Assembly: GCA_043228905.1 (NCBI GenBank)
Contig: JBHGNT010000016.1
Location: forward strand, 1,674,001 to 1,738,000
Direction of reading: 5' to 3'
DNA length: 64,000 bases
Source of the DNA: Azolla caroliniana
Lineage: Eukaryota > Plantae > Polypodiophyta
Shown here: positions 11,617 through 34,515 of the stretch, in pieces
Layout: each line of letters opens with the position of its first letter
Numbering within the stretch: position 1 is the stretch's first letter
The notes under the pieces: generated by a model
The model's input: the letters and a program-made list of their open reading frames with translations, nothing else
What the model was told of the DNA's origin: nothing
Database searches by the model: none
Position numbers and translations under genes: made by a program

Positions 11617-14241
11617 AAGAAAGAAGAAAGAAAGATATATTAACGTCTTCTAAGGCCAAATTTGGCCCATGAGACAAATAGGTTACAACAAAAATGAGTG
11701 TTTATCCAATCATCAAAACTAAAATAAAAGAAAATAGCTTAAGCTAAGAAAGTTCTAGTAGTGTACAAAACTTTGCACTAAGCCTAATCTCATTTCCACC
11801 CAAGTCTCTCAAAAAGAAGTGGGAGGTCAAAAGTTTTTGGTGTGGGTGTGACCCATGGTCCCGATGCATAGAGTGCCCTAGCCATGGCTTCTAGGCGGTG
11901 TAGTTCACATTCCCTTATTTTCTTTATTGCTTCTACATCTCGTTCAGTTGCTTTGAAACCCGACATCCGAGGGCGTTTGGTTCTTCTTTGATTTTCTGCT
12001 TCATCAAGGAAAAGTCTGAGTGGTGCAGGTGTGTCGACATTCATTGTCTCCCCCTGTTCCTTAAAAACTTCATTTGTTATATGTTGGTAAACATTAGCAA
12101 CATTATTATCAACGTTTTGTAATTTATTCTCTCTGTGTTGTTTCAATTCTAAGATGTATCTACCTAATTTCTTTATATCTAGTGTATCTAATAGTTTAGG
12201 GAGGGTGGGAGAGGAACCAAGTATGTCTTGGTATTTTGCCCTTATCTCGGCATAGGTGGGGCATTTGCATGTAAAATGGTACTCATCCTCTATCTCTATG
12301 TGGCATAACCTACATATCCTTTCCTCCCTAGGGACTCCATTAGTACGTCCATTCTCAATCTCAAGTTGGTGAGATGATATTCTAAGTTGATCAATGGCAA
12401 CCCTTAGTGCATGTGGTAAGAATACATCTAGATATTTTGGGCGCGTGATAAAACCTAACTCAGAGAAGTGCATAAAGTGTTCCTTATAGTACGACATTTT
12501 AGATGGGAGTGGCTCTAGTGGGGTGATCCATTTATACCGAGTATAAATTTGCCATATTTCTTGGTGTATTACTTTATTACGGTCCTCACAAGAGATTAAA
12601 GTGTTATCAGTCGTGTGGTCGTACTTAAGGGGGGGGAGGTTAGTAATGTCTAGACCGTTGGCAAGAAGCCAACTCACCATCATGCCATACCATGAGCTAG
12701 TTTAGCCGGACTCATACAGTGCTCGAGAAGCCTTAAAGGCTTGGTGGGATATTCTATCAAGTGGTTGGTTATGTAACCTGTGTATAAAGACTACCAGTTG
12801 AAAAAGTGCTTCTACTAACATAGGGGGTAGAGTGAACTCAGCCCTAATAATGTCATGTGGGACCGACGATTTGCTTCGAAGTTGGCGTGATAACATCATC
12901 ACCAATGGTCTCTCTAATTGCGCCCACATGAAAGATGGTAGTCTTGGGGCCCAAACCGCTGATGCATACATGAGAGAGGGAGTCACTAATGAGTCAAAGA
13001 GCCACCCTTTAGTTCGTGGCTCTTGGAAGTATGCTTGGTGGCATTGTCTCTCGAGGAGTGAGAGGGATGCATATCCTCTTGTAAGTCTATCCTTCGCTGG
13101 TTGTGTCATCGAAAATTTACCTGAGCGGGCACTGAAAGTGACTTCGAGATAGACATATGATCCAACCACCTCAACTAGGCTATGGGAGATAGTTAGGTGA
13201 CACTTAGCTCTAACTTGGGCCGACGTGTGGAAGATAAGGACTTTCGTTTTCCCTAGATTCACTACCAATCCTCGTTGTGTGCAAAAGTCATCTAAGGCAT
13301 TGAGGTGCCTTTGTAGGTCGTGTTCGGATTCAGAGAGCAAAACTATGTCGTCTGCATAGAGCAAGATACGCACCTGCGTATCCCCAAGGACTACTCCATT
13401 GCCTCCCTTACGAGCAATAAAATCTGTGATCTCATCAATGTAGATCCCAAAAAGAGTTGGAGATAAGGGGCAACCTTGTTTTACACCAATAGTGCTAGTG
13501 AAACTATCGGATATGCCGCCTGGGCATCAAACACACCCAGACACTTGTTCATATAGTGCGTAGATGGCCCACACCATGTCATCTGGTATCCTCAAGTTCT
13601 TAAGCCTATCAAACAACCGCTCTCTAGGGACCGTGTCAAAGGCTTTGCGGAAGTCCACAAAACAACAATATAGTTTCTTCTTGCGAGCCTTAGTCTGGTC
13701 AATCAAGCATCTAAGTGTGAAGATATGGTCAATAGTGGAGAAGGCTCGTCTAAAGCCAGCTTGTTCAGGTGCACGAAGATTTAAGGTCTCCATATACTCG
13801 CTAAGCTCTGCCTCCATTACTGCACCATATAATTTAGCAAGGGTATGACCTATCATAATGGTCCTATAAGTATTTGGGTCCATGGGGGGCCCCCCCTTTA
13901 TGTATGAGGGCCACTGTGTTCATGGTCCATTCTGGTGGAAAACCCTCTGCGAGGGCACGATTGAAGATTAGAGTTAGCAAGGGAGCTAGGCACTCTCTCG
14001 CGTATATGATGTGTTCTGCTAGCAATCCTGTGTGGTCCATGGACTTCCTATGTTGTAATTTCTTTATGACCTTCGTGACCCTAGAGATCGTGAAGAGTGT
14101 CTCCACAGTAGGTCGCGGTGTAGAAGGCATTGGAATGGGTGGTTGGTTTGGGATGTGGTAAAGTCTCTCTCTATAAGTGTGCCAAGTTTCGGGATCTTCG
14201 ATGGGTGTTTGTGGTCTTGGTTCCCGTAATCTCTTCCATGC
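11617..14241 (-). mobile_element. 5'-truncated RTEX/RTE-type non-LTR retrotransposon (RT plus C-terminal CCHC), degenerate
   Basis: ORF pieces QAGFRRAFSTIDHIFTL, CFVDFRKAFDTVPR, VKQGCPLSPTLFG, LLYADDIVL and LRISSHQLEIENGR...CRLC...EDEYHF..C. Frameshifts and stops are present. (TTTC)n tail on the sense strand, with (GA)n on both flanks. Confidence 0.9.
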
Positions 14242-14263
14242 AGAGAGAGAGAGAGAGAGAGAG

Positions 14264-14304
<41 letters not shown>
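14242..14304. repeat. Compound (GA)n(GT)n microsatellite
   Basis: Seen directly, at the 5' truncation point of the RTEX copy. Confidence 0.95.
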
Positions 14305-14306
<2 letters not shown>

Positions 14307-15011
14307 TCTTAATGTTCGATGTTCCCACTAGTCCTTTTTCATCAACTAAGTCTTGAGAGAGTATGTTTAAGTTTTAGTTGTTAGGTTGTAACTCGTGTTT
14401 AAGTATTGTGTCTCCCTAACTTCGAAATTCATACAAGATCGACACACAAGAAACGTTGTTACAAGCATGACCGTAATCAAAGTTCTCTAACCTTATGGTT
14501 TGTTGAGGCTAATTCATAAGAAATGAAGGGTAAGTGTTGAATCATTCTCAATCATATGGTGGGGGATAATTATAGAGCGTTTCATCACTTGATTACATAT
14601 AAGGAAGCAATGAAGTGTAAATGGTAATGGGAACATTTTAAAGATTGGTATTTTTATAATGTATTTATAAGTTGCATGAGATGTCAATAATAATCCCATT
14701 TCCATAATACAAAGAGGTTGTCAAATTGGTTCCACATTGCTACAAGTTTAAGCATACATGTGATCATTGATGACAATAAATCAAGGCCTATATATTGGTA
14801 TTTGATTATGTCAACTAGAACAAGCTTCTTTCGCATGCATTTTACAATTCTATATTGAATAAAAAGGTTTTCCAACAAGCAAGTCGTAAATTGTAATACT
14901 ACACATGTCAATATATGGTTCGTTTATGAAACACATAATGCATTTGGTATATTAAGTGACTGTACAAATAATTTATTGTTTCATTACAAAGGAGATATAC
15001 TAATAGTATTC

Positions 15012-18000
15012 TTAATAATATTTTTTCCAAATAGGATGTTGCTTCCATAAGTCTGCTATATCTTCTAAAGGTACAAGCTTGGTTTCGGGAAACAAGAAAT
15101 AAGTAAATATTGTCATAACAAACACCCAACCAGCAAAGAAAAAGAAGATTGATGCTTTGAGGTGGCAAAGCATAGCTAGAAATGTTTGTGCTGTTGCAAA
15201 GACGAAGAGCATTAATACACCAATATTAATACTTTGACCTAGAGGTCTTATTTCCAATGGAAATATCTCACTAGGCACAATCCAAGCCAAAGGACCCCAA
15301 GAAAGTGAGAAACACACACAATATAAACATATAAGGATTACGCCAAGTATGCCAAATCCTTTTGATACTGTATTGTGGTCTCCTAGCTTCCATTGGAATA
15401 AAAGGCCTACAAGAACCTACAAGATAAATAAATATATTAGTTTATAGTCGATAACATGTGAATTGGATACTTATCCAAGTTAGCATGATTAATTATTATG
15501 TAAACAATACAATTCACCTACTAGAAAATTAATAAGCGGACCTTTTTTAATGCATTTATGGTATATGAACATCCTTAATGTGAAATATAAATATGAAGTA
15601 TTCTAGAAACATCAACATGGTTTGATGAATCCCTATGAACCACCATACATTAAACATTAATTGGATAAATGTTGGAACCATGAGTTTTCTTTATAGTTAT
15701 CTACACTCACCAAGAAAAGGAACATTGTGATTCCACCATAACAAAACAATATTCGTCTACCAAACTTGTCCAAGACAAAGGCTGCAAGGATAGTGCATCC
15801 AATGCTAATGACACCAAGAATTACTGCAGAGTAGAGAGATGCATTGTGTCCAAATCCAAGTGTTTGAAACAAAACCGGAGAATAAAATGTGATGAGGTTA
15901 ATTCCAGTGACCTACATCAACAACACAAGAAAATGCACGTGCCATTTAATATACTATCAAAATCATAGCTTTAAATTAATGTAGCAATATCATCAAACAT
16001 AATAATGCTAGAAAAGTTGGGGTAATATATGAAGCATGAGGTTAGTAGTTTCATAACGTTCAGGAGATCAATAACTTACTCACAAAGAAAGCATTGATAT
16101 ATAACATGTTAATGCATCAATTGACTCATTGAATATTTCAAACTCACTACTTAAAAGATTTAAGTGAAATTACTTATTGCTTATAAACTTGACTCATTAA
16201 GTCCTTTTAGCATAATATCAAGTTAACCTCACAAGTGTTATAGTTCGGCATCGGAATAGCAATATGAACGTTGCAACATTACAAAACATTTGATAAGAGA
16301 GAATTAAGTTTAAGTTCTTTGTTTGTACGCACATGTTTATTTAATGACATGATTTCCATATGTGCTTGTAATAGATTGAACGTAGCATCTCACTATTAGT
16401 TGATTGTGGCATGTGCACATAAGTTTATGTATAATTTGTTGTAGTTTTATTGAGAAAAAAAGAATCTCCAAAACCTTGAAGTCAAGACCCTCTACATATT
16501 GAAGATTTAGTGTTCTAAGATTAAGGTATTTGGTCAACAAAAATCATGATTAATGGATGTCTTGGTAAATATATAGTCTTCAGCTGAACAGTAAGTGATA
16601 GCTAAACGATCCACCTTTCAGTCCAATGTGTCCAGAGTATTTGAGATATTTTTTAGCTCTCCAGTTAAGTTAGACAACTAGAAAGTCAAATTTTCTATGT
16701 CACATTAATGGCTTTAAAAAAGTTCCTTTCAAGTCGTAATAAAGTTTGTATCCTATAAGTTATAACTATGTCATTCATGAGTATTTAACATCATCTCAAG
16801 CTTAAAACTTTGAATATAATCTAAACAAATAAGTACCTATGAACAACAAGAGTGAATCTCTAGTGAGCATCGTTACAGGTGGATTCAAAGATAGGGTTAG
16901 GCAAACTTGCACATTAGTTGTTTGAAGGGAGGACGAAGCGGCACGAGAATACTTCTCCGACTTGTGGCATCGTAGCCATCAGAATTAATCGCGGTCTCAA
17001 CAACCCACTTGACTCGCACCTTCACCAGAAAATCAACCGACTCCCCAAATTTGTTCTGTTTAAGCTTAATGGTTTATCTTCTAATCGTTCAATGTTTCAC
17101 TTCTCATTGTTGTCGTTGTATCTAACCAATATATACATTTGTAACCCTATTTTATAAAATGTTTTTCTTTGCTTAATCTATCATTTTTGGGCTAAAAAGA
17201 GACTCATTTTTTGTCTTAATATTGTGAAAATCCTTCATAATTTCATTTTCCTTGTGCTAATAATGTATTTTGATCCCAACCTCACGTGTTAATCATTGTT
17301 CAACTGGTCACTCCTTTCGAGTCTTAAGAGCCTTTGAGACTTATGAGCCTTTGAAATGGTAACTAGTTCCTAGACTTGACTTAAAATTTTGATGTGATTT
17401 ATCTTCATTGTCCATTTTTCTAATAGCTTCTTGTGGCAAAATGTTAAATTGCTTCATCAATAACATGTTCACTTTGTGAATATCTTTAGGATGAATTGAA
17501 ACTATCATCATACCTGCTGGAAAAATGGAATGCAAAAGGCCATAATTAATTGAGGACGATATTTTCGTTGAAGGATATCTCTCCAAGGTCGTTGTGCAGT
17601 CTTTGATGTCTCCACTGCTTTAATAATATCATTGAGTTCATCTTGCACATCATGGGTTCCTCTTATCTTTTGTAGTACACAAAGAGCTTCATCTAGATGT
17701 TGCCTTTGTATGAGGCTACTTGGGGAATCAGGCATCCAGACGGAACCAATGGTTATGATCGATGCCGGAACAAACGCCAAACCAAGTGACAACCTCCAAC
17801 CATAAGGCACGATGTTTCCAGTTCCGTAATTTACTAGAAAAGCCGCGGTTCCCCCCATTGTTATTGTTATTTGAAACATTGTTGTCAATTTACCTCGAAG
17901 TTTTGGTGTTGCCATTTCTGACAAGTATAATGGTACAGCCTATCACCAAAAGAGATCACAAGATAAATTCTTTTTGAAAATCTATTTCTTGAATGGAAAT

Positions 18001-19798
18001 ATTGATTACATGATATCAAATATCAAAGTGGACTTCATCAATAAAAACAATAATTTGTATAGTCATAGTGCAAGGGATGATAATACGTATATAAATCCAT
18101 ATACAAACATACATAGTTTTCCATTGTTGCAAAATATTAGGTCTCTAAGTAGACATATTCTCATTGTCTAATTCTCCAATGAAATTCACATCATGGTTAT
18201 CTTTATATAACATATCTCTTTGGAGTGTCAATCTTGTATACTGTATATCTCCATGATTTTTGCTCTTAGATTGTTCATTCTTAACGGCATGCCTAATTCA
18301 TAACAAATGACTATTTGTTTCGTAATAGTAGAATCTTTAGGATATAAAGATGTCCATTTTCCACAATCATGACCTATGATTGGTTTATGCATCATAAATT
18401 TAGGATTATGTTTTATCGATTGTGTTTGGGATTAAGAAAAATGTTGGTTTATGTTGGGATATCAATTACGAATCCTTAATGCTTGTCGGCTATTATCTCG
18501 TCATTGGTCTTGAAACATTGGGATAAACAATGTTTCTTGCTATACTAACACTGCATAGTTTAAGCATGATTTGGGATTTAGGTGAGCATATAAGTCTAAT
18601 ATTACAAAATGATAAAAGAATATATATAGGGTTAGAGAGACAAGAGTGGGGAAAGATAAGAGGGATTAGGGGACTAGAGAGTGAGGATATTTGTCTTGTA
18701 TCCTTCTAATTCTAATATATATCCATGTATACTTTGAAAGAACAATTATGCCTTTGCATCAAGAGTTTTGGAAAATGTGATGCATGAAATATTACGATAT
18801 GTTATCACCCTTAAAAGAAGACACAATAGGTCTACCTCTGTTGGTAAGGTCTTATTCTATAAAAGGATCATGTGATCTAACGCAATATTCCTAACATTCC
18901 TTACCATTACAAGTTACAATCATGATACGGAAAAATTAAACCCTATGTATGCTTGTGACCATGTGGCTGAACATTAGTGTGTTGGATAATGAGATTTCAA
19001 AACATGCCTCGAAAGTTGACACCCAAGTGTGACCTTGATACACGAGGTTGTAGATTTTTGGACAAAAGTAGACTCCCAAAGGCAAGCTCGATGGCCAAGG
19101 CGATAGAGTCTACACCAAGCCATTGGACATGAAACCAAGAGCTCTTGAACCCCGAGTGTGTACTAGAAAACATTTTGGGGGGAAAGAGGGAGAGAGAGTG
19201 TGGACTAACTTGGCAAGTGAAACCGAGGCCGATGCCAAGGGCGATGCGACCGGCAATGAGCATGGACAAGTTTTGGGCGGCGGCATCGATGACGGAGCCG
19301 AGCAAGAAGAAGACGGCGCCGATGAGAATGGAGGCCTTGCGGCCATGTGTCCGGGTGATGCGGGACGCGGCCAAGAGCGTGGTGAGCAGTGCGGCCATGT
19401 AGAGCGAAGACGTGAAGAGTGTCAGAACCTCGCTGTCGAAGAGACAGTAATTGTCCGTTTTCACATTGTGCCGCTTCTCGTACACGTCCGGGAAGAACTT
19501 CAGCAAGAAATCGTCCATGGACGTCACCCCCCCTTGTAACCAAACAATCAATCATATGTATTTATATACATATACATACATACATATACATACATGTGTG
19601 TGTGTGTGTAGATTTAGGGTTTTGGATTCATGAGGGGAGAGTAGATTCTGAAAAAAAAGAGAAAAGGCAATGGATGTTCTTCTTGATCATTTATTTACCT
19701 GAGATTCCTAGATCATAGCCAAAGAGGAGCCCACCACAAGATGCAGTCATGCAGATGAACATCAAGAAAGGGGTAACACCGCTGCCATTAGGACCCAT
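15012..19798 (-). CDS. STP: Sugar transport protein (STP-family MFS sugar/H+ symporter), copy A, 484 aa, 5 exons
   Basis: Exons 19798-19699, 19532-19210, 17939-17514, 15911-15711, 15416-15012, all GT-AG with consistent phases and no stops. Motifs [87 protein letters not shown], PETK. Confidence 0.95.
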
Positions 19799-21516
19799 TA
19801 TGTATATTAAATGCCTAATTCCTATCCCTAATCTCCTTAAAAATAAAATTTAGAAACCTAATCCAACCCTACCTCATAGAGCACTAACATAACTTTTTTA
19901 ATTGATCTCCAGTATCTAATCGGGATTCAAAGAACCCTAATCCCCATAATCCCAAGTTGTAGGTAGAGAAACCCTAATCATTTATTTTCTAGCATTGGCA
20001 TTCATATGCTGCACTCCAATCCCAGCTACTAACCCAATAACTCCAATAACCTGACCCCAACAATCCAACCCTAACCCTAAGCCTAACCCTAAGCCTGGCA
20101 ATGCAGAAGTCAAGTGCTCCTGCTGAAATTGGGTATCTTCAAAGGGTCTGAAGTCATGTGGTTCCATTGAACTTGGGTATTTCAGTTGTCTTATCTGTAG
20201 GTGTCTGTTTTTGTTGTGTAGCTCAATGTGTGACTGGTGTAGAGTAAAAGCTTTTGGCCCACACCTCCTTTCACACTTTCCTTCTTGTTACCACCTCCTC
20301 CTATCCACATTTGACAATTACCCGAGATCTTGCCCGCCCATATCTAGTCATCATTCCGTGACTCGTTTCTTGAGTCATACACCCATTATCTTATGCTGTC
20401 TCACTTGGAACACTACAACTCTTGATCCATTCACGGCGAAATGTTGGACCACTACCTCTTGCTCAAATGCCACGACTCTCATGACAAATAATGGTATCTT
20501 GTCAATACACATGACACCTCCCTTGTCAACATGTCGTAACTCGATCGATAACAAAAAATAATATCTTTTTCCAAATAACATGATTCGATGACAAATGATA
20601 GTACGTATTAAATGATGTATACATAAAGTGACATATATTAGTTAGTTACCCCTCGATTACTTCTAGGGATAGATATATATTTGACTAACATGATTCCATA
20701 GAACATTGAATATGATTGCTGGGATAGGGTTGCAAACTTGGGTTCGATGATAAGATATAAACCACCAAGCCAATAAAATATAGAGTTTTGCCAAATCTTT
20801 TGGAGATTTTGAGGTCATTACTAGTTCAGTACACTAATGTTGCATGTAGTTTAGGACGAGTATTATCCGTTGTAACAATTGTGCGTGAAGTGGGGGTTTG
20901 AAAATTTGAATCCACAACTTTAGGTTCCTAGCTTGAATGTCTCCTAAAAAAGTCCTAGTGTGGCCATGACTTTTATGAAATGAAGCAAAGAGATAGAGAA
21001 ACATGTTAGGGTTATGACAATCCAAATCCACTTAATAAGACAAATCATGTCAATTTTCTATGGCCATCCATTACAAAGGCAAAGAACACACACACAATTT
21101 TCTTTGTTGGAGCAAGTAGAAATCCTTTCCTGAGTGGTATGTTCATCTTGTTTATTGGTTGGGTAGCTCAATGTGTGCGTGTGTGTATGTGCATGTTTGC
21201 ACAATAACCTCGTTGTTACGAGATGTCTACCACTTAGATGGTGCTCCTTATCAAATATTTCGAAAGACAACAAGGGGAGTCTATTATTTGAGTTGTTTGA
21301 TACACTATATTTGAATAAAGAAATAAAATAGTTCGTTGTTTGTCTTGTATACGTGTAAAGTGCTTCTACAAAAATTAGTAGTTATTTATCACAATGTGTT
21401 TTTTACTTGCCCATAGTAATCAAACAATTGACATCCGTAGACACAATATTACCAATGTAGCGACTTCATTTGGTACCTTTATCTCTCTCTCTATCTCTCT
21501 CTCTCTCTCTCTCTCT

Positions 21517-22264
21517 TGGTAAAAGCACACAATTATATTAATTGTATGTAAAATCCACTTAGTTACAACACTTCTTAGTCTCCTCTACCTATCATATACC
21601 TATGTAGGGAGAGGGACGTTCTGTAATGCTACTAAAAAACCTGAATATGCATTTGAGTAAATGATCCCCACATGCTCTAACATCCAAAAATTCCACATGA
21701 GAATACCTTTAAGCTTCTTTATATAGGCTTTCACCCCATGTCTATTATCAAACATGAAAGCATTACGCATATTCCAATTGTATTATAGACCCCAATAACG
21801 TAAAAATTGGAACAATATCTCCATCTCATCATTTGATCCATTTTGAACATAATGAGAAAAAACCCATTGTTGAGGTCTCAAACAACAATAGGTTAAAACT
21901 TGCCAAATGTTCAATAAGTACTTCCAAATGGTACACGCTATAGGAGGACATTTAATGAACCTATGTGTACTATCCTCCAATGGAACGGTGCAAAAAAACA
22001 AGTGCCAAACCCTAGTCCTCGTCTCTTTAAGGCCGAACCTAATGGGAGCTCACCAATCATGACTCTCCATATGAATACCTTTGCACGAAATGGTAGATGG
22101 GAATGCCAACCATGTTGTAATATTTTCCACCACCTTGCAACTGACTTATTTACATTCCACACCTTCGTTGCTTTAGGAGATAGCCAAGATATTGATGCCA
22201 TCACATGATGACACAATATATTTGTAGTGACCTGTAATAAGCGTGTACCATCTTGTAACCGCCA
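21517..22264 (-). mobile_element. L1-clade LINE 3' fragment (zf-RVT region)
   Basis: KVFIWRVMIGELPLGSALKRRG...CFFC...EDSTHRFIKCP...IWK. Flanked on both sides by (TC)n (21482-21516, 22265-22285). Confidence 0.8.
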
Positions 22265-25200
22265 TCTCTCTCTCTCTCTCTCTCTATGATGTGAAGCAAT
22301 CGTGGCCATTTGATGTTACTTCCTCCCATCATTTACTACATGCACAAACCTCACACAATTTGACATTAGACACCAAGCCTAGATTTGTAGGCACATGCAT
22401 ATGTTGTATGCTTAATGGTAAGAATGACCTCATGAAAATTCTTGAGACATGCAGCCACACCCTCTCCACTAGAAAAGGAGATTGCCCTTTAATGTTATTA
22501 TTGGTTCCATTGGTCATGTTACTAAGTTCTAACCTTCCAAGGATGTTAAAATATCAATATAGACGTCTTTCTCCTCCAATAGAAAACAAAATTTTAATAT
22601 GTAATCTCTTATTTGGATACATATGCCATTTTTACCCCTCTCTCTCTCTCCATATAAATGGTAATGGTAACATTTTACGGAATGTTATTTTTATATTGTA
22701 TTTATAAATTGCATGAGATGTCAAAAATAATCCAATTTCCATAATACAAGGCAGGTTGTCAAATTGGTTCCACATTGTTACATCAACATGTTTAAGCATA
22801 CATGTGATAAATGATGAAAATAAATCAAGGCCCATACATTGGTATTTGATTATGTCAACTAGTAATACTACGCATGTCAATATATGCTTCGTTTATGAAA
22901 CGCATAATGCATTTGGTAGCTTAGGTAACAGTCGGCAACGCGAAACCACGGCTAAACGGTTAAAACGGTTTGGTTTGGTTTAGGTTCACGCTTTTTTTTA
23001 ACGGTTCATTTTCAACGGTTAGAAACCGTGATTTAATGGTTTTTTAATTTATAATTTTTTAAAAATTGTTTTAAAATCTACTGAGTGAGCAAGCTCAACA
23101 TGGGCCGGATTGATTGAATAAGTGGGGTGCCATATCGGTGAGCTGGATTCGGAGAACCAAAACGGAAGGCCAGATCCGAAGAGCCAGACCCACGTGTGAA
23201 CCGATAGGCTGTTAGAGACCTACACTCGTAGACTACTAGGTAGTTAGTGTCAGTAGCTCAGTACGAGCATTGAAGTACTTGTCAATACTTCAGTCGGTCC
23301 TTTATGGACTTGTATAAAAATGTGTTTCGTAGAACATTGGATGTACAGAGTTTTAGAGTAGTTTTTTGAAATTAAGTCTTTCACTGTTCTGCTCTCTCTG
23401 TCTCTCCTGCATACACTGTGTATGATTCAAGCTTCCATTAAACATTGTCTATGTTTTTCTGTTGCTATCCAGCAAGCCAATTTGTCTAAGCTTCCACATA
23501 TTAACTTTTACATGGTATCAGAGTGCGGGGGTTGAGAACCTCAACTGCCGACAAGCGATTCGTAAAAGACAAACCCAAATCCAACATTCGGTAAGAATAG
23601 ACAGAAGAAGGTATGAACAGAGGGATGGCAAGCTCACTTGCTACTGAGAAGCTCGATAGAAATAACTATGCATCTTGGTCGTACAAGATGCACCAATATC
23701 TACTCGGACATGGATATTGGAGCTATGTCAAGGGAGCAAATGAAGTAGCGTTGGAACCGACATACAAGGACTTCCCGGCATGGGAACAAGGAGCGAGTAG
23801 AGTGTTGTACTACCTCGCGCCCTGTGTGCACGACCAAATGCTCGACTACATCAGAAACACAAAGTCGCCGAAGGAGGCATGGGAAAATCTTCGAAAGATT
23901 TTCACCACAAGTACCACGACACAGAAGTTGCAGCTCTGGCAAGAGCTAAACGATATTCGACAAAGGGACATGTCAGTCACCGACTATTCCACCAAGATCA
24001 AGGAGAGGCTCCATCAACGTGACAGTGGACAAAGACGAGATGGTGCAGATCTGCCTTGGTGGTCTAGCGCGTGAGGTATGGGCCTATCCGGATAGCAAGT
24101 TGCATCCGGGAGAAGCCATTGCCCTTCTTCGACTTGCAATCAATGCTAATGGTCGACGAAAACCACGCAAGTGGGTCGAGGACCACTCAATCAGACAACC
24201 AGATGTTGTACACAGAGGCGGATCAACCCCGTGGGCGTGGAGAACGAGGTGGATCGACATGCAATAGCGGCAACCAACAAAAGTAAAACCAAAGGCACAA
24301 AAATAGTGCCAACAGAAATTCCGGACCCTCCACGAGTAGGGGGAGTCAAGATGACGTCGAAAACTGGGAATCAAAGGCCAACACAGAATGTTGGTATTGT
24401 GGCAAGAAAGGTCATCGAGGAAGCGAGTGTTGGAGGAAGCGTGCTGACACGGATAAATCCTGATCCTGCAAGGCCGGACAAGGGGGTCAGTATAACTCGC
24501 ACTGCGTAGACGGATCCGGAGGATCCGGAACCGGGAAGACTGAAAAAGAGCCCACCTTTGTGGAAGTGCAAGGCGAACTCGATGAAGAAGACCACTTCCA
24601 GATCGGAGGAAGTGTGGTACTTTGACTCTGGAATGTCTAACCATATGACGAACCATGAAGAGTGGTTCTCGTATCTAGAAAAGCCGGAGCAACCGGGAGT
24701 TGTTGAAACCGAAGATGACACTCCGCACCCGATTAAGCATGTCGGAGAAGTCCCCCCCCTGCCACGTCGGACAGAGAGGGAAGCTCATGAACGTGTTGCA
24801 CGTTCCGACAATTACGAAGAACCTTGTGTCAATCAGACATATCGTTGACCAAGGGATGCAGTTGCGATTTACGCATCTAGGGTGCTTCATCAAGGAAGAA
24901 GGCTAAATAATCACACAACGGCCCCGGGACGAGAGGATGTTTATCCTCAACGCCAATGACGTTGGTGCCGCTCTATTCGCGAAAGGACAGAAGGTCAAGT
25001 TGGATATCAACTTGTGGCATAAGCGGATAGGCCGCGTCAATTATCAAAGGCTTTAGGAAAATGCAATCGAAACGAATAGTTCTTGAATTGCCGAAATTCA
25101 GTGGTTGGAAGGCCCAAATTTGTGAAGCCTGCCAGCTTGGGAAGCAACATCGGCTTTCGCTCTCCACCGAAAGAAACCGAAGCCGCAACAAGCTTGATTT

Positions 25201-25708
25201 AATATATTCGGATGTATGGGGACCGACACAAAACGTTAGTCTTGGCGAGAGTCGATATTTCGTCTCCTTCATCGACGACTACAGTCGGCACACGTGGATC
25301 TATCTCATTGAGAATAAAAGCGAAGTCTTTGACTGTTTCCGGAACCTGCAAAGTCTTGTCGAACAGGAAATGGAAAGGAAGATAAAGTGTCTACGGTTGA
25401 ATGGCGGAAAAGAATACTTTTACGGCCAATTCAACAATTATCTACAACAAAAGGGAATTCGAAGAGAATTTAGGTGTAGATACACACCAAAACAAAACGG
25501 TGTGGCCGAGAGAAAGAACCGGTCGATTGTGGAGGCAACAAGGGTGATGCTTGAGGAGAAAAGCATGCCCAAGTTCTACAAGGCAGAGGGGGTCTGGACG
25601 GTTGTCTACATAGAGAACCGGATCGAGGATAAGGTATCAACACATGAGCTATAGTATGAGCGGAAGCCGAATTTAAGGCACCTTAGGGAATTCGGTAGCA
25701 TAGCCTAT

Positions 25709-26128
25709 GTGCATGTGCCAGATGAGAGGTGGAGAAAGTTGGACCCGAAGTTAGAGCAGTGCATACTAGTTGGCTACTCTCATGGGCAGAAGGGGTATAA
25801 GTTCTATAACCCCTAGACTAAGCAAGTACAAGTTGAGATGTTGAATTTGACGAGTCGGCATCTTGGCACTCTCTACCAACTCCAACCCCCGACTCCGACC
25901 CAATTCTGGAAGATGAGGCTAGTGCATGTGCCAGATGAGAGGCGGAGAAATTTGGACCCAAAATCTGAGAAGTATATACTAGTCGGCTTCTCTCATGAGT
26001 AGAAGGGGTATAAGTGCTATGGCCCCCGGACTAAGCAAGTACAAGTAAGCCAAGATGTCGAATTTCACGAGTCGGCATCCTGGTACTCTCTACCGACTCC
26101 AACCCTATTCCGGAAGATGAGGCTAGTG
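25709..26128. repeat. About 213-bp internal tandem duplication in the copia integrase C-terminus
   Basis: GTGCATGTGCCAGATGAGAGG...GAAGATGAGGCTAGTG begins at 25709 and again at 25922. Confidence 0.85.
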
Positions 26129-26384
26129 AGCCCGAAAAGATCCAGGCAGAACAAGAAGAAGGATTTTGTACTCTAGACTAGAGTCTGAATTCATTCAGTT
26201 AAGCGGTCCGAACGAGAGATTGAGTTGGAATGACCAATCCAATGAAGAGTCAGCAAGAAGCGGAGACTTGGTCGTGCTCTCCCCATGCAAAGAACCGAGG
26301 AGACGGTTCACTCACAAGGAGAAGGGTAAGAAGAACATGCCGGAGTACGACACCGACAGAGATGAGTAAGATCGGAGCGAATCC

Positions 26385-27662
26385 TTCTCCTACTTCTCAC
26401 TTTTCATTATTTTAGCATCCTCCTCCTACCCCTCTTCTCATTTTTTGTTTCTTTCTATTTTTCTACTCTATCCTAATACCCTCCCCATCGCCTTTCGTTT
26501 TTGTTTTAACTGTACCCCTCACTTTTATACTCCTACCCCTCCCCTTACTTTTCCAATTTTGTCTTTCTACCCCTCCCCAAACTTTAAATTTTATCATTCT
26601 ACCCCTCCCCTTATTTTTTGACCACCCCTCTCCTCCCCTTTCATAATTTCAGAATCTAACTTCTTACCCTTCCCCCTACTCTTTATAATTCTCCCCTTGC
26701 CCGTCCCCGTACTTTTACATATTTTCCTCATACCCCTCCCCCTACTTTTTATAATTCTCCCTTGCCCCTCACCCTACTTTTACATATTTTACTCGTACTC
26801 CCCCCCTTACTTTTATATAATTTCCTCCTATCCCTCCCCTCAATTCCCTCCCTTTAAGTTTTATCTCATGCCCCTCCTCACTTTCTTCCTATTTTATATT
26901 TATCCCACCCTAACTTTTATGTCTTCCCCTTAGCCCTCATCTCAAAATCATTTTTCTTCTAAATCTCACTTTAGCCTCCGTTCTTTAACTTTAATTTCAT
27001 TCTACCCCTCTAAATTTTACTTCCTACTATTGCCCCATTTTCTAAATTTCAATCTACCCCTCCCTCCCCCTTCCCTTTTTCTAGATTTTTACACATACCC
27101 CTCCCCCTTCTTATTTCTAGATTTTCACTCATACCCCTCGCCCTTCTTTTTTCTAGATTTTCTCTCATACCCCTCCCCCTTCTTTTTTCTAGATTTTCTC
27201 TAATACCGCTCCCCTTTCTTTTTTTTAGATTTTCACTTATACCCTCCCTCCTATTTTTCTATGATCACCCTACCCCCCCCCCCCCCCCAACCTCTTTCCA
27301 TATTATTACTTTACCCCTCCCTCTTTCAATATTTTATTCTACCCCTCGCCCCATATTTCTAATTTTTTATTCCTACCCCTGCCCCCTTTTATTCTTCTAA
27401 ATATCACTCACTCTACCCTTTCTTGCTTTAATTTAATTTCCACTCTACCCCTCCCCCCTTACTTCTAAATTCATGCTTTCTACCCGTCCCCTCTCATACC
27501 CCCATCCTTTTTTCAAAGATCTCTATAAAAGAATTTCCTACCCACCACTATACATCACCCTCCCTAACTCCCACATCACACATTTTCAACTAAGCCCATA
27601 AAATATTTTACCCCCCACCAAATCCATCACTCCCCCTAAACTCCCACGTCATAAAATTTGAC

Positions 27663-27726
<64 letters not shown>

Positions 27727-28119
27727 CCTATATAAACCCCTCAAATTCTACATGGTCATGTGCACTAATTAGCTCTTTAGGAGCGAAATTAGTTTGCCAC
27801 ATCAACCATTTCTTTGTATTATCTTTTAAGTTCTTAATATGAATTAGTTTTTAGTGTATCCCTCCCTCCCTCCCTCTCTCTCAGTATGTCTCTAATTTTG
27901 TAGGAATTTTTAGGTCTAATAATTAATAGTAATAATATGTGTAATCTCTCTCTCATAATGTTAGTGTTCTAGTATTTATATTTTCTTCTAATCCTCATTA
28001 GTATCTTTCTCCCATTTTATGCTTAATCTTCTCCCTCTCCATGCTATACACCGATGGCACACCATTCCACACTCTTTGTTTACGACTTAACGGTCAACCA
28101 ACCCTAAACCCTAAACCCT
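26385..28119. repeat. Pyrimidine-rich minisatellite-like insertion ending in plant telomeric repeats
   Basis: Many TTTTCACTC(T/AT)ACCCCTCCCCC-type units, (TC)n at about 27666-27723, and (CCCTAAA)2CCCT at 28102-28119. Copia sequence resumes on both sides. Confidence 0.8.
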
Positions 28120-29035
28120 CTGGAAAGAACGAAGACGGACCTTCGGAGACGAAGTCCGAGTCAATCAAACAAGCCCTCAAATCGGCTAATGAGAAGTTAC
28201 ACCGATCAACCCGCTGGAATAACCGCGTAAAGAGGTATGCGTATAATGAGTACTTGGCGCATCATTATGCGTAAATGACCAAGGTGGCGGAAAGTGAGTG
28301 AGCTGGAGAGCTACGTAGAAGCAGCAAAAGACACAAACTGGCATGCCACGATGGAAGAGGAAATGCAGGCACTCGATGCCCATCGATTCCTATGTAGTTA
28401 TGGTCCTAATAATTAGTGTTAGTAGCTCAGTACGAGCATTGAAGTACTTGTTAGTACTTCGGTCAGTCCTTTATGAACTTGTATAAAAAGGTGTTTTTTA
28501 GAACATTGGATGTACAGAGTTTTAGAGTAAGTTTTTGAAATTAAGTCTTTCATTGTTATGCTCTCTCTATCTCTCACGGGTACACTGTGTGTGATTCAAG
28601 CTTCCATTAAACCTTGTCTCTGTTTTTATGTTGCTACTCGGCAAACCGGTTTGTCGAAGCTTCCGCATATTAACTTTTACAAAATTTAATATTTTTTATT
28701 TTTATTTTTTAAAAGTTTTTATAAAATAATCTTTTCATTTTTAAGCATAATTGTCACATCTTAAGAACATCTTTAAAATTTTGAAAAATTTCAAATTAAA
28801 ATTTTGAATTTTAACTTAAGTTGAAAAGTGAAACTGAACCACGAAACCGTAGGGTTTATGGTTTAACGGTTTGGATTTTTTTAACGGTTTCGGTTCAAGT
28901 TTCAAAATTTTAAAACGGGTTTTGACACTCTCAAACCGAACCGAACTGTTGCCGATTGTTATTATTAGGCATTTAGTGACAATACAAATAATTTATTGTT
29001 TTATTACAAAGGAGATACATATATGAATACTTTTC

Positions 29036-32000
29036 TTAATAATATTTTTTCCATATAGGATGTTGCTTCCATAAGTCTGCTATATCTTCTAAAGGCACAA
29101 GCTTGGTTTCCGGAAACAATAAATAAGTAAATATTGTCATAACAAACACCCAACTAGCAAAGAAAAAGAAGATTGATGCTTTGAGGTGGCAAAGCATAGC
29201 TAGAGATGTTTGTGCCAACGCAAAGGTGAAGAGCATTGATACACCAATATTAATGCTTTGACCTAGAGGTCTTATTTCCAATGGAAATATCTCACTAGGC
29301 ACAATCACAGCCAACGGACCCCAAGAAAGTGAGAAACACACAACATATAAACATATAAGGATTACACCGAGTATGCCAAACCCTTCTGATATTGTATTGT
29401 GGTCTCTTAGCTTCCATTGGAATAAAAGGCCTACGAGAACCTGTAAGATAAATAAAATATATATTAGTTAACGTTGATAACATGTGAATAAGATTTTCGC
29501 ATGATTAATTACTATGTAAACAATATAATTCACCTACTAGAAAATTAATAAGTGGTCCCCTTTTAATGCATTTATGGTATAAGAACATTCTTAATGTGAA
29601 ATATAAATATTAGGTATTCTAGAAACATCAATCTCATTTGATGAATCCTATGAACCACCATACATTAAACATTAATTGGATAAATCTTGGACCCATGAGT
29701 TTTCTTTATAGTTATCTACGCTCACCAGGGAAAGGAACATTGTGATTCCACCATAACGAAACAATATTCGTCTACCAAACTTGTCCAAGACAAAGGCTGC
29801 AAGGATAGTGCATCCAATGCTAATGACACCAAGAATTACTGCAGAGTAGAGAGATGCATTGTGTCCAAATCCAAGTGTTTGAAACAAAACCGGAGAATAA
29901 AAGGTAATGAAGCTAATTCCAGTGACCTGCATCAACAACATAGGAAAATGCATGTGATGTTTAATATACTATCAAAATGATACCTTTAACTTAATGTAGC
30001 AATATCATCAAACATAATCATGCTACAAAAGTTGGGGTAACATACAAAACTCTTGCATAACGATAGTAGTTTCATAACATTGAGGAGAGCAATAACTTAC
30101 TCACAAAGAATGCACGGATATACAACATGTTAATACACCAATTGACTCATTAAATATTTCAAACTTACTACTTGCAAGGATTAAATAGTTATTGCCTATA
30201 AACTCGGAGTCATTGATTTCTTTTACCCTAATATTTCAGATTTCAAGTTAACCTCATAAATGTTATAGTTGGGCATTGGAATATCGATATGAATGTTGGC
30301 AAAATTATAAAACATTTGATAAGAGAGAATTAAGTTTAAGTTCTTTGTTTGTACGCACATGTTTATTTAATGATATGATTTGCATACGTGCTTGTAATAG
30401 ATTGAACATAGCACCTCACAATTAGTTGATTGTATCATGTGCGCATAAGTTTATGTATACTTTATTGTAGTTTTATTGAGAGAAAATGAATATCCAAAAC
30501 CTTGAAGTGAAGACCCTATACATATTGAAGATTTAGTGTTCTATGATTAAGGTATTTGGTCAACAGAAATTCATGATTAATGGATGTCTTGATAAATATG
30601 TAGTCTTCAATTTAACACTAAGTGATATATATGCTAAAAGATTCACCTTTCACTCCAATGTGTGATGTGTCCAGAGTATTTGGGATATTTATTAGCTGGC
30701 ATGTAAGGTTAGAAATCTAAAAAGTCAATTTGTATGTCACATTAATGGCTTTGAAAGGTCCTTTCAAGTCATAATAAAGTTTGTATCCTATAAGTTATAA
30801 CTATGTTATTCATGAGTATTTAACATCATCTCAAGTGTTAAAATTTGAACATATACAAGAGTAACAAAATCTAAATAAATGAGTATCTATGACCATTGAA
30901 TTTAGCCATGACCAAAATTTCCATTTTAAATTTGAATTGGAGATTGAAGGGTATGCAAGCATTTTACATGCACAAAAAAGCAAGACAATGACACATGAGA
31001 ATCAATGCATGTCACTAAAGGTGAAGGAACAAGGACTAATAGTGTGTTACCTAGTGGACTGCACATCGAGTGACAAGGGCATGCAAATGACTACATGACT
31101 CATGAGGTAGTAGGTATCCTCGTCATTATGAGATGAGAAGCATTTAAATATCCTAAGTAGAGAATGTAGTAAGATGGAATTCAATTTGGATCTCATGCAT
31201 GGACTGTAGTCTGTGACTACTAGTAGTTAATGGATGTTCTTGTCAACACTCTCAAAATATGGAGAACTTGATTGTGGACTAGACAAATTCTTTAGTTTTT
31301 GAAGGGTAAAAACTTCCATTTAAAAGAGCATTGCTTGAATTGCTTTTCTAGCAAATATTAAGAGTTGTTTTGATGGGGTAAAATAAGTCTTACCACAATC
31401 AATTTGTACCAAGTTATTAATGACTAACCATTTATCCACAATAAATCTAAAAGGTGAAATGTGTGCCTTGTTTCCATGTGAGAATAACATCCACTCAATC
31501 TTGTATGTCCTAAATGCTAAGCTGCTCTTTGTTGTTGAAATTTGAAAATGAAGCCAAGATTTAAAGAAACTCTGGTGTACATTAAGAAATATTGCAAAAA
31601 ACATTCAAACTTGAATTTAATTGCAACAACGATTTGTGTTTCTATAGAAATAGCTAAAGAGAGTGTTACAACAAGCTAAGCCAACCAACCCCATGTAATT
31701 GATGCATATGAACAAAAACGTTGAATGTCAATAACTATACCATTGAGTGGTCTCACAATAAAATTGGTGAAGGTGGACTATATTAGCTATTTAAAGGATC
31801 AAACGATGACCAATTAAAGTAAAGTTACGGAAAATGAACTCACTTTTTTGTTTGTAGATGGAACAAATGAATTCACAAGGTTTTATTGGAATGTTTGTAT
31901 GTTTTATATGACTATATTCATTAAGTTGAAGTGGCAACTAGTTCCTAGACTTGACTTAACATTTTGATGCGATTTATCGTCATTGTCCATGTTTCTAATA

Positions 32001-33526
32001 GCTTCTTGTAGCAAAATCTTAAATTGCTTCACTAATAACATGTTCACTTTGTGAATATGTTTAGGATGAATTGAAACAATCATCATACCTGTAGGAAAAA
32101 TGGAATGCAAAAGGCCATAATTAATTGAGGACGATATTTTCGTTGAAGGATATCCCTCCAAGGTCGTTGTGCAGTCTTTGATGTCTCCACTGCTTTAAGA
32201 ATATCATTGAGTTCATCTTCCACATCTTGGGTTCCTCGTATCTTTTGTAATACACGGAGAGCTTCATCTAGATGTTGCCTTTGTATGAGGCTACTTGGGG
32301 AATCAGGCATCCAGGCGGAACCAATGGTTATGATCAATGCCGGAACAAAAGCCAAACCAAGTGACAAACGCCAACCATAAGGCACGATGTTTCCAGTTCC
32401 GTAATTTACTAGAAAAGCCGCGCCTGCCCCCATTGTTAATGCTATTTGAAACATTGTTGTCAATTTACCTCGAAGTTTTGGTGTTGCCATTTCTGACAAG
32501 TATAATGGTACAGCCTATCATCAAGAGAGATCACAAGATACTTAATTTCTCTTTGAAAATCTATTTCTTGAATGGAAATATTGATTACATGATACCAAAT
32601 ATCAAAGTAGGCTTTATCGATGAAAACAATAATTTGTATAGTCATAGTGCAAGAGATGATAATAAGTATATAAAGGTATGTATGCTCATGACCATGTGGC
32701 GGAACATTCGTGGACTCGATAATGATATTTCCAAACCGTGTGGGGGGGTTAATAAGAAACATGCCCTTTGACAATCCCTGAGTGTGACCTTGATACAAGG
32801 TTGTAGATTTTTGGACAAAACTAGAGCCCAAAGGCAACTTCGACATCCAAGACGATACGTTCTACACCAAGCCATGAGACTTGACACCATGGAAACCATA
32901 TATAGTAAATGTGTGTAGGTAGCAAAAGCTCCCCGATCTTGAGTGTGCACTAGAAAACATATGGGTGAGCACGAGGGGGAGAGTGTCTGGGGACCGACCT
33001 GACAAGTGAAACCGAGGCCGATGCCGAGGATGATACGACCAGAAACAAGCATGGTCAGATTCTCGGAAGCGGCATTGAGGATGGAGCCGAGCAAGAAGAA
33101 GATGGCGCCGATGAGAATGGAGGCCTTGCGGCCGCGTGTCCGGGTAAGGTGGGACGCGGCCAAGAGCACGGTGAGCAGTGCGGCTATGTAGAGCGAAGAC
33201 GTGAAGAGTGTCAGTACCTGGCTATCGAAGAGACAGTAATTGTCCGTTTTCACATTGTGCCGCTTCTCGTACACGTCGGGGAAGAACTTCAGCAAGAAAT
33301 CGTCCATGGACGTTACCCCTCCTTGTAAACCAAACAATCTATCAGTCAATCAATTCACCATTTCATCACGTTATTGATTTGGTTCTATATATTTATATGT
33401 AGATTTAGGGTTTTGGATTCATTTACCTGAGATTCCTAGATCATAGCCATAGAGGAACCCACCACAAGATGCAGTCATGCAGATGAACATCAAGAAAGGG
33501 GTAACACCACTGCCATTTTGACCCAT
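29036..33526 (-). CDS. STP: Sugar transport protein (STP family), copy B, 484 aa, 5 exons
   Basis: Exons 33526-33427, 33321-32999, 32514-32089, 29926-29726, 29440-29036. Exon lengths are identical to copy A (100/323/426/201/405) and the frame is open. About 45 aa differences from copy A by manual count. Introns and flanks also align. Confidence 0.95.
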
Positions 33527-33644
33527 TATGTATATTAAATGCCTAATTCCTAACCCTAATCTCCCTAAAAATAAAATTTGGAACCTAATTCAACCCTACC
33601 TCTAGACCACTTATACCACTCTAGTATCCAATCGCGCGACTCAA

Positions 33645-33775
33645 AGAACCCTAATCCCCAGTTGTAACTCTAGAAACCCTAAACTCAAGCTGCAAACTCT
33701 AGAAACCCCAATCCCCGGCGGAGTTGTAGCTCGAGAAACCATAATCCCACGTTGTAGCTCGAGAAACCCGAATCA
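33645..33775. repeat. About 27-30-bp tandem units with AAACCCTA-like (telo-box-like) cores upstream of STP copy B
   Basis: AGAAACCC(T/C/G)AATCCCC...GTTGTA(A/G)CTC(T/G)AG occurs about 5 times, versus about 2 units in copy A (19930-19980). Confidence 0.7.
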
Positions 33776-34515
33776 TTCATTTTCTAGCATTTGCATTCAT
33801 ATGCTTGCTGTACTTCAATCCCATCTACTAACCCAATAACCCGATAACCTAACCCAACAATCTAACCCTAGCCCTAGTCCTAACCCTGGCAATGCAGAAG
33901 TCTCAAGTGCTCCTGCTGAAATTGGGTATCTTCAAAGGGTCTGAAGTCATGTGGTTCCATTGCAATGGGATATTTCAGTTGTCTTTATTTGTAGACGTCT
34001 GTTTTTTGTTGGTTAGCTCAACTTGTGACTGTTGGGTAGTTTAATGTGTGACGGTTGAAGCGTAACCTTTTGGTCCACACACCTTTCGGTTTCGACACAT
34101 TCCTTCTTTTTACCACATCCTATCCACATTCGACTTTTGTCGAGATCTCTTGTAATGCTCACCCATATCTAGTCATCAATCCATAACTCGTTTCTTGAGA
34201 CTTCGTATGAAGTCATAAACCCATATGTTCAACTACTTGTGGAATTCAACATGTCCCACTGGCCATGTAGTCGTATTGTTGACCATACTGTATTGTGGTA
34301 CAATTGTAGCATTTTTCACCATGTCCCACTATTGGTGCAATTCAAAATATCCCACTACCCGTGTTGTGGTGACTTTACTCAATTGTGGTGCCGTTGTAAT
34401 GTTTTTCAACATGTCTCACAACCCCATGCAATTGTGACCATATTTAGTTGTGGCCCCATTGTAGTATTTTTCACACACTTTACTAATATAATTGTGTTTT
34501 GAGAGAGAGAGAGAG

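Follow-up and report, generated by a model that had tools for sequence, protein, structure and literature searches.

We analysed a window of 64,000 nucleotides (nt) from Azolla caroliniana (contig JBHGNT010000016.1, positions 1,674,001 to 1,738,000 of the forward strand), in which two tandem genes for predicted STP-type H+/sugar symporters lie on the minus strand. The plant Sugar Transport Proteins (STPs) are a subfamily of the MFS sugar porters. The genes are referred to as copies A and B, and all positions below are those of the window. The amino acid differences between the two copies concentrate in the predicted sugar-binding pocket. The gene models are based on open reading frames (ORFs), splice sites, and translations, and the duplication units that contain them were delimited by blastn of the two halves of the region.

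15012..19798, minus strand: copy A, STP-type H+/sugar symporter gene; exons 1-5 at 19798-19699, 19532-19210, 17939-17514, 15911-15711, and 15416-15012
29036..33526, minus strand: copy B, paralog of A; exons 1-5 at 33526-33427, 33321-32999, 32514-32089, 29926-29726, and 29440-29036
14951..20236, minus strand: duplication unit with copy A, paired with 28971-34031
28971..34031, minus strand: duplication unit with copy B

Both genes consist of five exons separated by GT-AG introns, and each coding sequence is 1455 nt long (484 amino acids plus the stop codon) with zero internal stops. The two proteins differ at exactly 45 residues (9.3%), and the coding sequences differ at 93 nt (6.4%). In a tblastn search of the 64-kb window with copy A, only A and B are matched. 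The duplication units also share a 5′ flank of approximately 440 nt, and the non-coding divergence of the aligned units is 11.8%. A block around exon 3 (17351-18095 versus 31926-32674) shows 93.7% identity between the copies, compared with approximately 88% elsewhere (blastn), and is probably an older gene-conversion tract.

Assignment to the STP family

Database searches were performed exon by exon, and the joined A and B proteins were compared only by scripts. The four larger exons of both copies score above the cut-off of the Pfam Sugar_tr profile (PF00083), covering profile positions 22-452. In phmmer searches against the PDB, the best match of each exon is AtSTP10 (7aaq, 6h7d), followed by STP6, with E-values from 1e-5 to 1e-42. 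The exons align with STP10 without gaps through transmembrane helices (TM) 1, 5, 7, 8, 10, and 11. Local numbering is that of STP10 minus 13 in exons 1-4 and minus 15 in exon 5; residues are given below in STP10 numbering and codons in local numbering.

The proton pair D42/R142 and the SP/A-motif residues E162, D225, and D344 are present in both A and B. The lid cysteines C77 and C449 (local 63 and 434), which are predicted to form a disulfide, and the swap tyrosines Y76 and Y306 are also found in both copies, as is the lid aromatic cluster (F55, F59, F60, F79, F87, and W202) that is defined as conserved throughout STPs (PMC6345825). The 12-TM Sugar_tr fold, lid, cysteines, and proton pair are common to A, B, and the Arabidopsis high-affinity glucose/H+ symporters STP10 and STP6 (6H7D, 7AAQ, 9G11). 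Identity to canonical seed-plant STPs is approximately 55%, and A and B are shorter than STP10 at both ends (484 versus 514 residues). Judging from these features, A and B are STP-type carriers in every structural respect considered except for the canonical set of glucose contacts. The departure from this contact set lowers the claim that they are glucose transporters, not the claim that they are STP-type carriers. The initial annotation of this DNA had described two intact genes of 484 codons with about 45 differences, in which the proton pair, the lid cysteines, and the cytosolic motifs are retained. This description is borne out for both copies, with 45 as the exact count.

Several other substitutions are shared by the two copies. 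A and B both carry G119A, N153C (GFANQ to GFTCQ), and P165T (SEMAP to SEMATP) at codons 106, 140, and 152, respectively, and G409A (codon 394) is found in A, B, and their fern relatives alike. G119, N153, P165, and G409 are 99-100% conserved in canonical STPs, and the first three are mostly kept in the fern relatives too.

Glucose contacts in copies A and B

The 13 glucose contacts of AtSTP10 used here are those listed by Paulsen et al. 2019 (PMC6345825). Six of the sites carry identical residues in A and B; L43, Q177, Q296, F401, and G406 are unchanged from STP10, and N332 is Ser in both copies. The remaining seven differ between the copies (A/B): F39 (F/Y), I184 (G/A), Q295 (Q/L), N301 (N/S), W410 (W/V), N433 (L/S), and T437 (V/T). 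In the order F39, L43, Q177, I184, Q295, Q296, N301, N332, F401, G406, W410, N433, and T437, the pocket string is FLQGQQNSFGWLV in copy A and YLQALQSSFGVST in copy B. The positions of the differing sites in copy B are as follows.

33449..33451, minus strand: F39 site; codon 26 is TAT (Tyr) in B and TTT (Phe) in A
32425..32427, minus strand: I184 site; codon 171 is GCA (Ala) in B and GGA (Gly) in A
32092..32094, minus strand: Q295 site; codon 282 is CTA (Leu) in B and CAG (Gln) in A
29912..29914, minus strand: N301 site; codon 288 is AGC (Ser) in B and AAC (Asn) in A
29306..29308, minus strand: W410 site; codon 395 is GTG (Val) in B and TGG (Trp) in A
29225..29239, minus strand: TM11 codons 418-422 of B; codon 418 (N433 site) is TCA (Ser) in B and TTA (Leu) in A, and codon 422 (T437 site) is ACC (Thr) in B and GTC (Val) in A

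The exon-wise alignment to AtSTP10 reproduces every residue of the 13-site table in the initial annotation, and the TGG-to-GTG change assigned there to W410V at 29308-29306 is confirmed. Support for the residues of B also comes from other samples, from which the exon searches recovered low-coverage ENA contigs. Contig L005 is 99.9% identical to the exon-3 region of B, and contig L008 is 98.6% identical to its exons 4-5. Together they confirm A184, L295, S301, V410, S433, and T437 of B independently of the assembly.

Most of the 13 contacts show little or no variation among the approximately 100 canonical STPs sampled. Position 39 is Phe in 100 of 102 canonical STPs and in every fern relative, position 410 is Trp in 99 of 102, and positions 295 and 301 are Gln and Asn, respectively, in all 102. 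The Leu295 of B is also found in two fragments from other samples (P0409 and P0411), the Ser301 is present in L008, and the Val410 is shared with L008, contig L009, and six exon-5 fragments of other samples. The I184 site falls in a hypervariable segment of TM5 (codons 166-173). The N433 and T437 sites take three residues each across related samples (I/L/S and I/T/V, respectively).

Neither copy has the full contact set of AtSTP10. A keeps nine of the 13 contacts, departing at I184G, N332S, N433L, and T437V, and B keeps six, being without F39, I184, Q295, N301, N332, W410, and N433. The amide or indole partners of glucose lost from B are Q295, N301, N332, W410, and N433. Compared with STP10, the summed volume of the pocket side chains in B is lower by approximately 215 cubic angstroms, and the number of Asn/Gln contacts falls from six to two. 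These values agree with a predicted pocket that is roomier and less polar. In STP10, the F39A, Q177A, and I184A mutations raise the Michaelis constant (Km) 8-, 37-, and 3-fold, respectively (bioRxiv 10.1101/2020.11.05.369397), and L43A strongly cuts the affinity (PMC6345825). The pockets of STP6 and STP10 differ only at L43/I39, and that methyl-group shift changes the sugar preference (PMC12054785). Unlike the STP6/STP10 pair with its single difference, A and B differ from STP10 at four and seven of the 13 sites, and the changes in B hit Q295, N301, and W410, positions that hardly vary, if at all, in canonical STPs.

The position of the differences within the protein should also be considered. 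Seven of the 13 pocket sites differ between A and B, compared with 38 of the 471 other sites (Fisher p=4.3e-5); the proposed concentration in the pocket thus holds, and the differences are not equally frequent elsewhere. For the whole gene, the proportions of synonymous and nonsynonymous differences (pS and pN; Nei-Gojobori) are 0.115 and 0.048, respectively, with a nonsynonymous-to-synonymous ratio (omega) of approximately 0.40. The pN of the 13 pocket codons is 0.295, exceeding the gene-wide pS (p=0.010), and that outside the pocket is 0.041 (pN/pS 0.36). Canonical STPs have 148 sites with at least 95% conservation at which A also keeps the common residue; these are referred to as near-invariant. 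B has changed six of the 148, four of which are pocket contacts (p=2.6e-5), and A has zero private changes at near-invariant sites. B keeps 138 of the 141 near-invariant residues outside the pocket versus three of the seven within it, a pattern not given by random decay.

Fern subclade and polarity of the changes

The nearest full-length relatives of A and B are "hypothetical proteins" of ferns with 61-66% identity, and a library-wide search with exon 3 led to L7F22_049815 of Adiantum nelumboides. The following members of the fern STP subclade were found.

Adiantum nelumboides: L7F22_049814 to 049816 (P0005, P0019, P0169)
Adiantum capillus-veneris: GOP47_0020809
Ceratopteris richardii: KP509_08G056500
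Transcript contig: P0175

The adjacent locus tags L7F22_049814-049816 on one contig indicate that the subclade forms a tandem array in A. nelumboides too. In a FastTree analysis of 109 full-length proteins, without an outgroup from other MST subfamilies, A and B pair with each other (support 100) within a seven-member fern clade (100), which is nested among fern, lycophyte, and seed-plant STPs. The terminal branch of B (0.11) is longer than that of A (0.023).

The commonest pockets of canonical STPs are F[I/L]QIQQNNFGWNT, and that of the fern clade is FLQGQQN[S/N]FGW[L/I][I/V], which is the pocket of copy A. Because the pocket of A is common to Adiantum and Ceratopteris, it is an old, conserved character of the clade (I184G, N332S, N433L/I, and T437V/I). 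In contrast, F39Y, Q295L, N301S, and W410V of B are found in no relative of the fern subclade. When polarised with the fern relatives as the outgroup, the 45 differences comprise 23 changes derived in B, 11 derived in A, and 11 of ambiguous direction. In the pocket, the change falls on B at each of the six polarisable sites (F39Y, G184A, Q295L, N301S, W410V, and L433S); the seventh (V/T at T437) is not polarisable. The initial annotation had regarded both copies as diversifying transporters. This view stands for the branch of B, which bears essentially all of the pocket change, but not for A, which retains the old fern pocket.

The loss of N332 in A and B recalls the STP7 lineage. According to a 2018 study as cited in PMC6345825, that lineage has lost N332, a contact of the C6 hydroxyl group, and has pentose (non-hexose) specificity. 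The pocket of the clade whose sequences are named STP7 by NCBI is FIQIQINLFGWNT (Q296I and N332L). However, the replacements and the clade differ from those of A and B, and the STP7-type proteins keep Q295, N301, W410, N433, and T437, unlike B. Two sister fern proteins, P0186 (A. capillus-veneris GOP47_0010595) and P0187, have independently lost W410 (Thr/Val), N433 (Val), and T437 (Ile), but keep Q295, Q296, and N301. They show approximately 56% identity and lie on a separate branch, and their joining was flagged by the tree tool as two long branches meeting. P0187 also has G406A. In limited literature searches, neither the fern subclade nor any STP without Q295, N301, and W410 was found to be described.

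Constraint, conversion, and expression of copy B

Between A and B, the 1455 coding nt contain no insertion or deletion (indel), compared with 32 events in 1940 aligned non-coding nt (16.5 per kb). Approximately 12 coding indels would be expected were B alone neutral (P=6e-6); the reading frame of B is kept by selection. Omega between B and its closest relatives is 0.24 in exon 3 (L006), 0.28 in exon 5 (L001), and approximately 0.22 in exons 4-5 (L008), and B is under purifying selection relative to these sequences.

Beyond the stop codon of B, the similarity to A is interrupted. An insertion of approximately 6 kb, which bears a Ty1/copia retrotransposon with long terminal repeats (LTRs), lies in the 3′ flank approximately 65 nt after the stop codon, and homology to the 3′ flank of A resumes beyond it at 22925.

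23241-28681, plus strand: Ty1/copia LTR retrotransposon, within the insertion 22926-28964

The two LTRs (23241-23512 and 28410-28681) are 272 nt each and 88.6% identical. The 5′ LTR is followed by a tRNA-Met-type primer-binding site, TGGTATCAGAG, and the gag and integrase ORFs lie at 23613-25654.

The contigs from other samples indicate that such gene pairs extend beyond this genome. In L009, from a more distant sample, exons 4 and 5 of one gene are followed by an intergenic spacer that leads to exon 1 of the next, and the 6-kb insertion is absent; this layout places the tandem pair in another taxon too. The gene at the position of B in L009 has V410, I433, I437, and N301, whereas L001, another B-position gene, has W410, S433, and T437. 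Intact genes at the position of B occur in at least three other sample types. Across 22 exon-3 and 12 exon-5 fragments, six of the nine covered pocket sites vary versus 39 of the 227 other sites (p=0.002), and the sites with at least three residues cluster in TM5 (172 and 173) and TM11 (418, 422, and 425).

Mosaic sequences are found among these contigs. L008 is identical to B except for 14 consecutive A-type sites (29758-29582), a run of four further A-type sites (29120-29054), and one private difference within the gene body. Contigs L010 and L011 were obtained from two different samples with two different assemblers. On a B haplotype, each of them has the letters of A in two places, the TM5 codons (32442-32423) and the surroundings of codon 282 (32093-32059), and B thus carries G184 and Q295 in these haplotypes. 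The pS among exons ranges from 0.06 to 0.20. The tracts in L008, L010, and L011, together with the identity of the exon-3 block and the uneven pS, indicate that conversion between A and B is ongoing. When the exon 4 to exon 5 DNA of A- and B-position genes is placed in a tree, the sequences form a star or group by taxon, which is what conversion would produce; orthology and dating were accordingly not read from it.

Two further candidates were dropped. Contig L004 (A flanks with a B exon-3 tract) was set aside as proof of conversion; both of its parts are approximately 100% identical to the window at 1.7x coverage, and it may be a reciprocal conversion event or an assembly chimera. The comparison of L002 with L009 was rejected as a second case of pocket omega above 1, the omega being 0.29.

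For expression, four RNA runs were aligned to copy B only (4,491 letters), and A was read indirectly through diagnostic letters. Spliced contigs in runs X1, X2, and X6 skip all four introns, with joints at 29438/29724, 29924/32087, 32513/32998, and 33320/33426. The contigs of X1 and X6 carry the letter of A at 37 of the 39 listed sites, and are therefore regarded as transcripts of copy A from this species or one very close to it. In X2, from a related organism, spliced forms with A letters and B letters occur at about equal depth: the B- versus A-letter depths are 42 versus 36 at the W410V codon and 45 versus 46 at the TM5 codons, the TM11 codons are also B-type, and the depth at the intron-4 joint is the sum of the A-like and B-like forms. 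The runs thus show expression of copy A, and of a B-type gene in a relative. As for transcription of both copies, a point raised by the initial annotation, A is transcribed (X1 and X6), while B's own mRNA was not found in the indexed runs.

The reading that we favour, with modest confidence, is that A and B are tandem members of a fern-specific STP subclade, in which B is a neofunctionalised proton-coupled carrier with low affinity for glucose. The old pocket of the subclade would mark a lasting change in specificity from that of the canonical high-affinity glucose site. A would have kept this pocket and, like its fern relatives, would have a moderately shifted specificity. B would have replaced six contacts on its own branch while its coupling and gating machinery was kept. 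These changes would remove most of the amide and indole hydrogen-bond partners of glucose and enlarge the cavity; B would have lost high-affinity glucose binding and would instead take a substrate that is larger or has fewer hydroxyl groups. The pocket would be the target of selection, with its segments shuffled between A and B by short conversion tracts. Transport by B, and the kind of substrate carried, are inferred. An extended proposal, to which we give only a small chance, is that B-type genes carry a substrate class new to STPs, for example a glycoside or a bulkier sugar derivative with fewer hydroxyl groups, and that the pocket segments are kept variable by selection and reshuffled by conversion. 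If this is true, a population would hold a repertoire of transporter specificities, as at resistance-gene clusters.

Several observations weigh against neofunctionalisation of B. X1 and X6, apparently from the same species, contain no B-type contig over the diagnostic sites, only A-like ones, and the mRNA of B was found in no indexed run. The best run shares 9% of the sampled words of B; in a k-mer control, the mRNA of A alone shares 7.9% of these words and that of B would share 29.6%, so the 9% matches cross-matching by A mRNA. The copia-bearing insertion may affect the 3′ end of B. The exon-3 pocket residues of B (the TM5 codons and Q295L) are polymorphic, not fixed. The differences also occur in clusters, with at least two nt changed in each of 14 codons, and the pocket pN could be inflated by multi-nucleotide events or by tracts converted from another paralog.

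The lack of B mRNA in the indexed runs and the retroelement-bearing insertion just past its stop codon would fit a silenced or dying duplicate, one in which glucose binding was the first function released from constraint and the frame has so far escaped mutation. The branch of B, approximately two to five times longer than that of A, and its loss of residues invariant across approximately 100 STPs point in the same direction. Nevertheless, we consider this explanation unlikely. A dying copy would not be expected to show zero coding indels against approximately 12 expected, to retain 138 of 141 non-pocket near-invariant sites, or to have an omega of 0.22-0.28 relative to close B-type sequences. 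Moreover, its counterparts are intact in at least three other sample types, the spliced B-type form in X2 is as abundant as the A-type form, and the pocket pN exceeds the neutral rate. We judge the pattern to be pocket-focused diversification rather than decay, and the earlier statement that the copies are not decaying is supported by the absence of indels, the low omega (approximately 0.22-0.28), and the kept machinery.

Somewhat less likely still is that the pocket pattern is a by-product of conversion from divergent paralogs or of multi-nucleotide mutations, tolerated without adaptive value. The contiguous A-type tracts on B haplotypes (L008, L010, and L011), the exon-3 block with 93.7% identity versus approximately 88% elsewhere, the uneven pS among exons, and the 14 multiple-hit codons are consistent with such an origin, as is the presence of the TM5 string of B in other taxa. 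Conversion, however, explains the movement of variants, not the hits at four of the seven invariant pocket sites versus two of the 141 others, and it leaves the top variability of the pocket across samples unexplained. Conversion between A and B should also erase differences, not make them. The least likely of the alternatives, and in our view an improbable one, is that B is a non-transporting or differently conducting STP: a sensor, a regulator, or an Lr67res-like protein in which hexose uptake is lost and another flux is gained. Key glucose contacts are lost in B with the fold and motifs preserved, and there is a precedent in the wheat STP13 variant Lr67res, which is without hexose transport and is associated with anion fluxes (PMC10231398). 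The changes in Lr67res, however, are located away from the pocket, in the N-domain close to the proton site (PMC6345825), and the proton pair and gating residues of B are all kept, which fits continued coupled transport.

If B is the neofunctionalised carrier proposed above, the locus would be a clear plant case of selection on a transporter binding site after tandem duplication; if B is silent, the locus would instead illustrate how constraint can be lost at specific sites. A graded natural series runs from the canonical pocket through that of the fern clade (four changes) to that of B (seven changes from STP10), the last on an otherwise intact proton-coupled scaffold. The natural mosaic alleles that swap pocket segments provide a ready set for testing the contacts responsible for specificity and for finding new substrates.

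The introns of the two copies differ in length. Intron 2 is 1270 nt in A and 484 nt in B, and an insertion of approximately 800 nt is found in intron 2 of A (18161-18961); B is without it, and contig L004 has it. Microsatellites of (CA)n/(TG)n with TA-rich sequence lie at 19570-19610, in intron 1 of A, and at 13864-14328, and their lengths differ between the copies.

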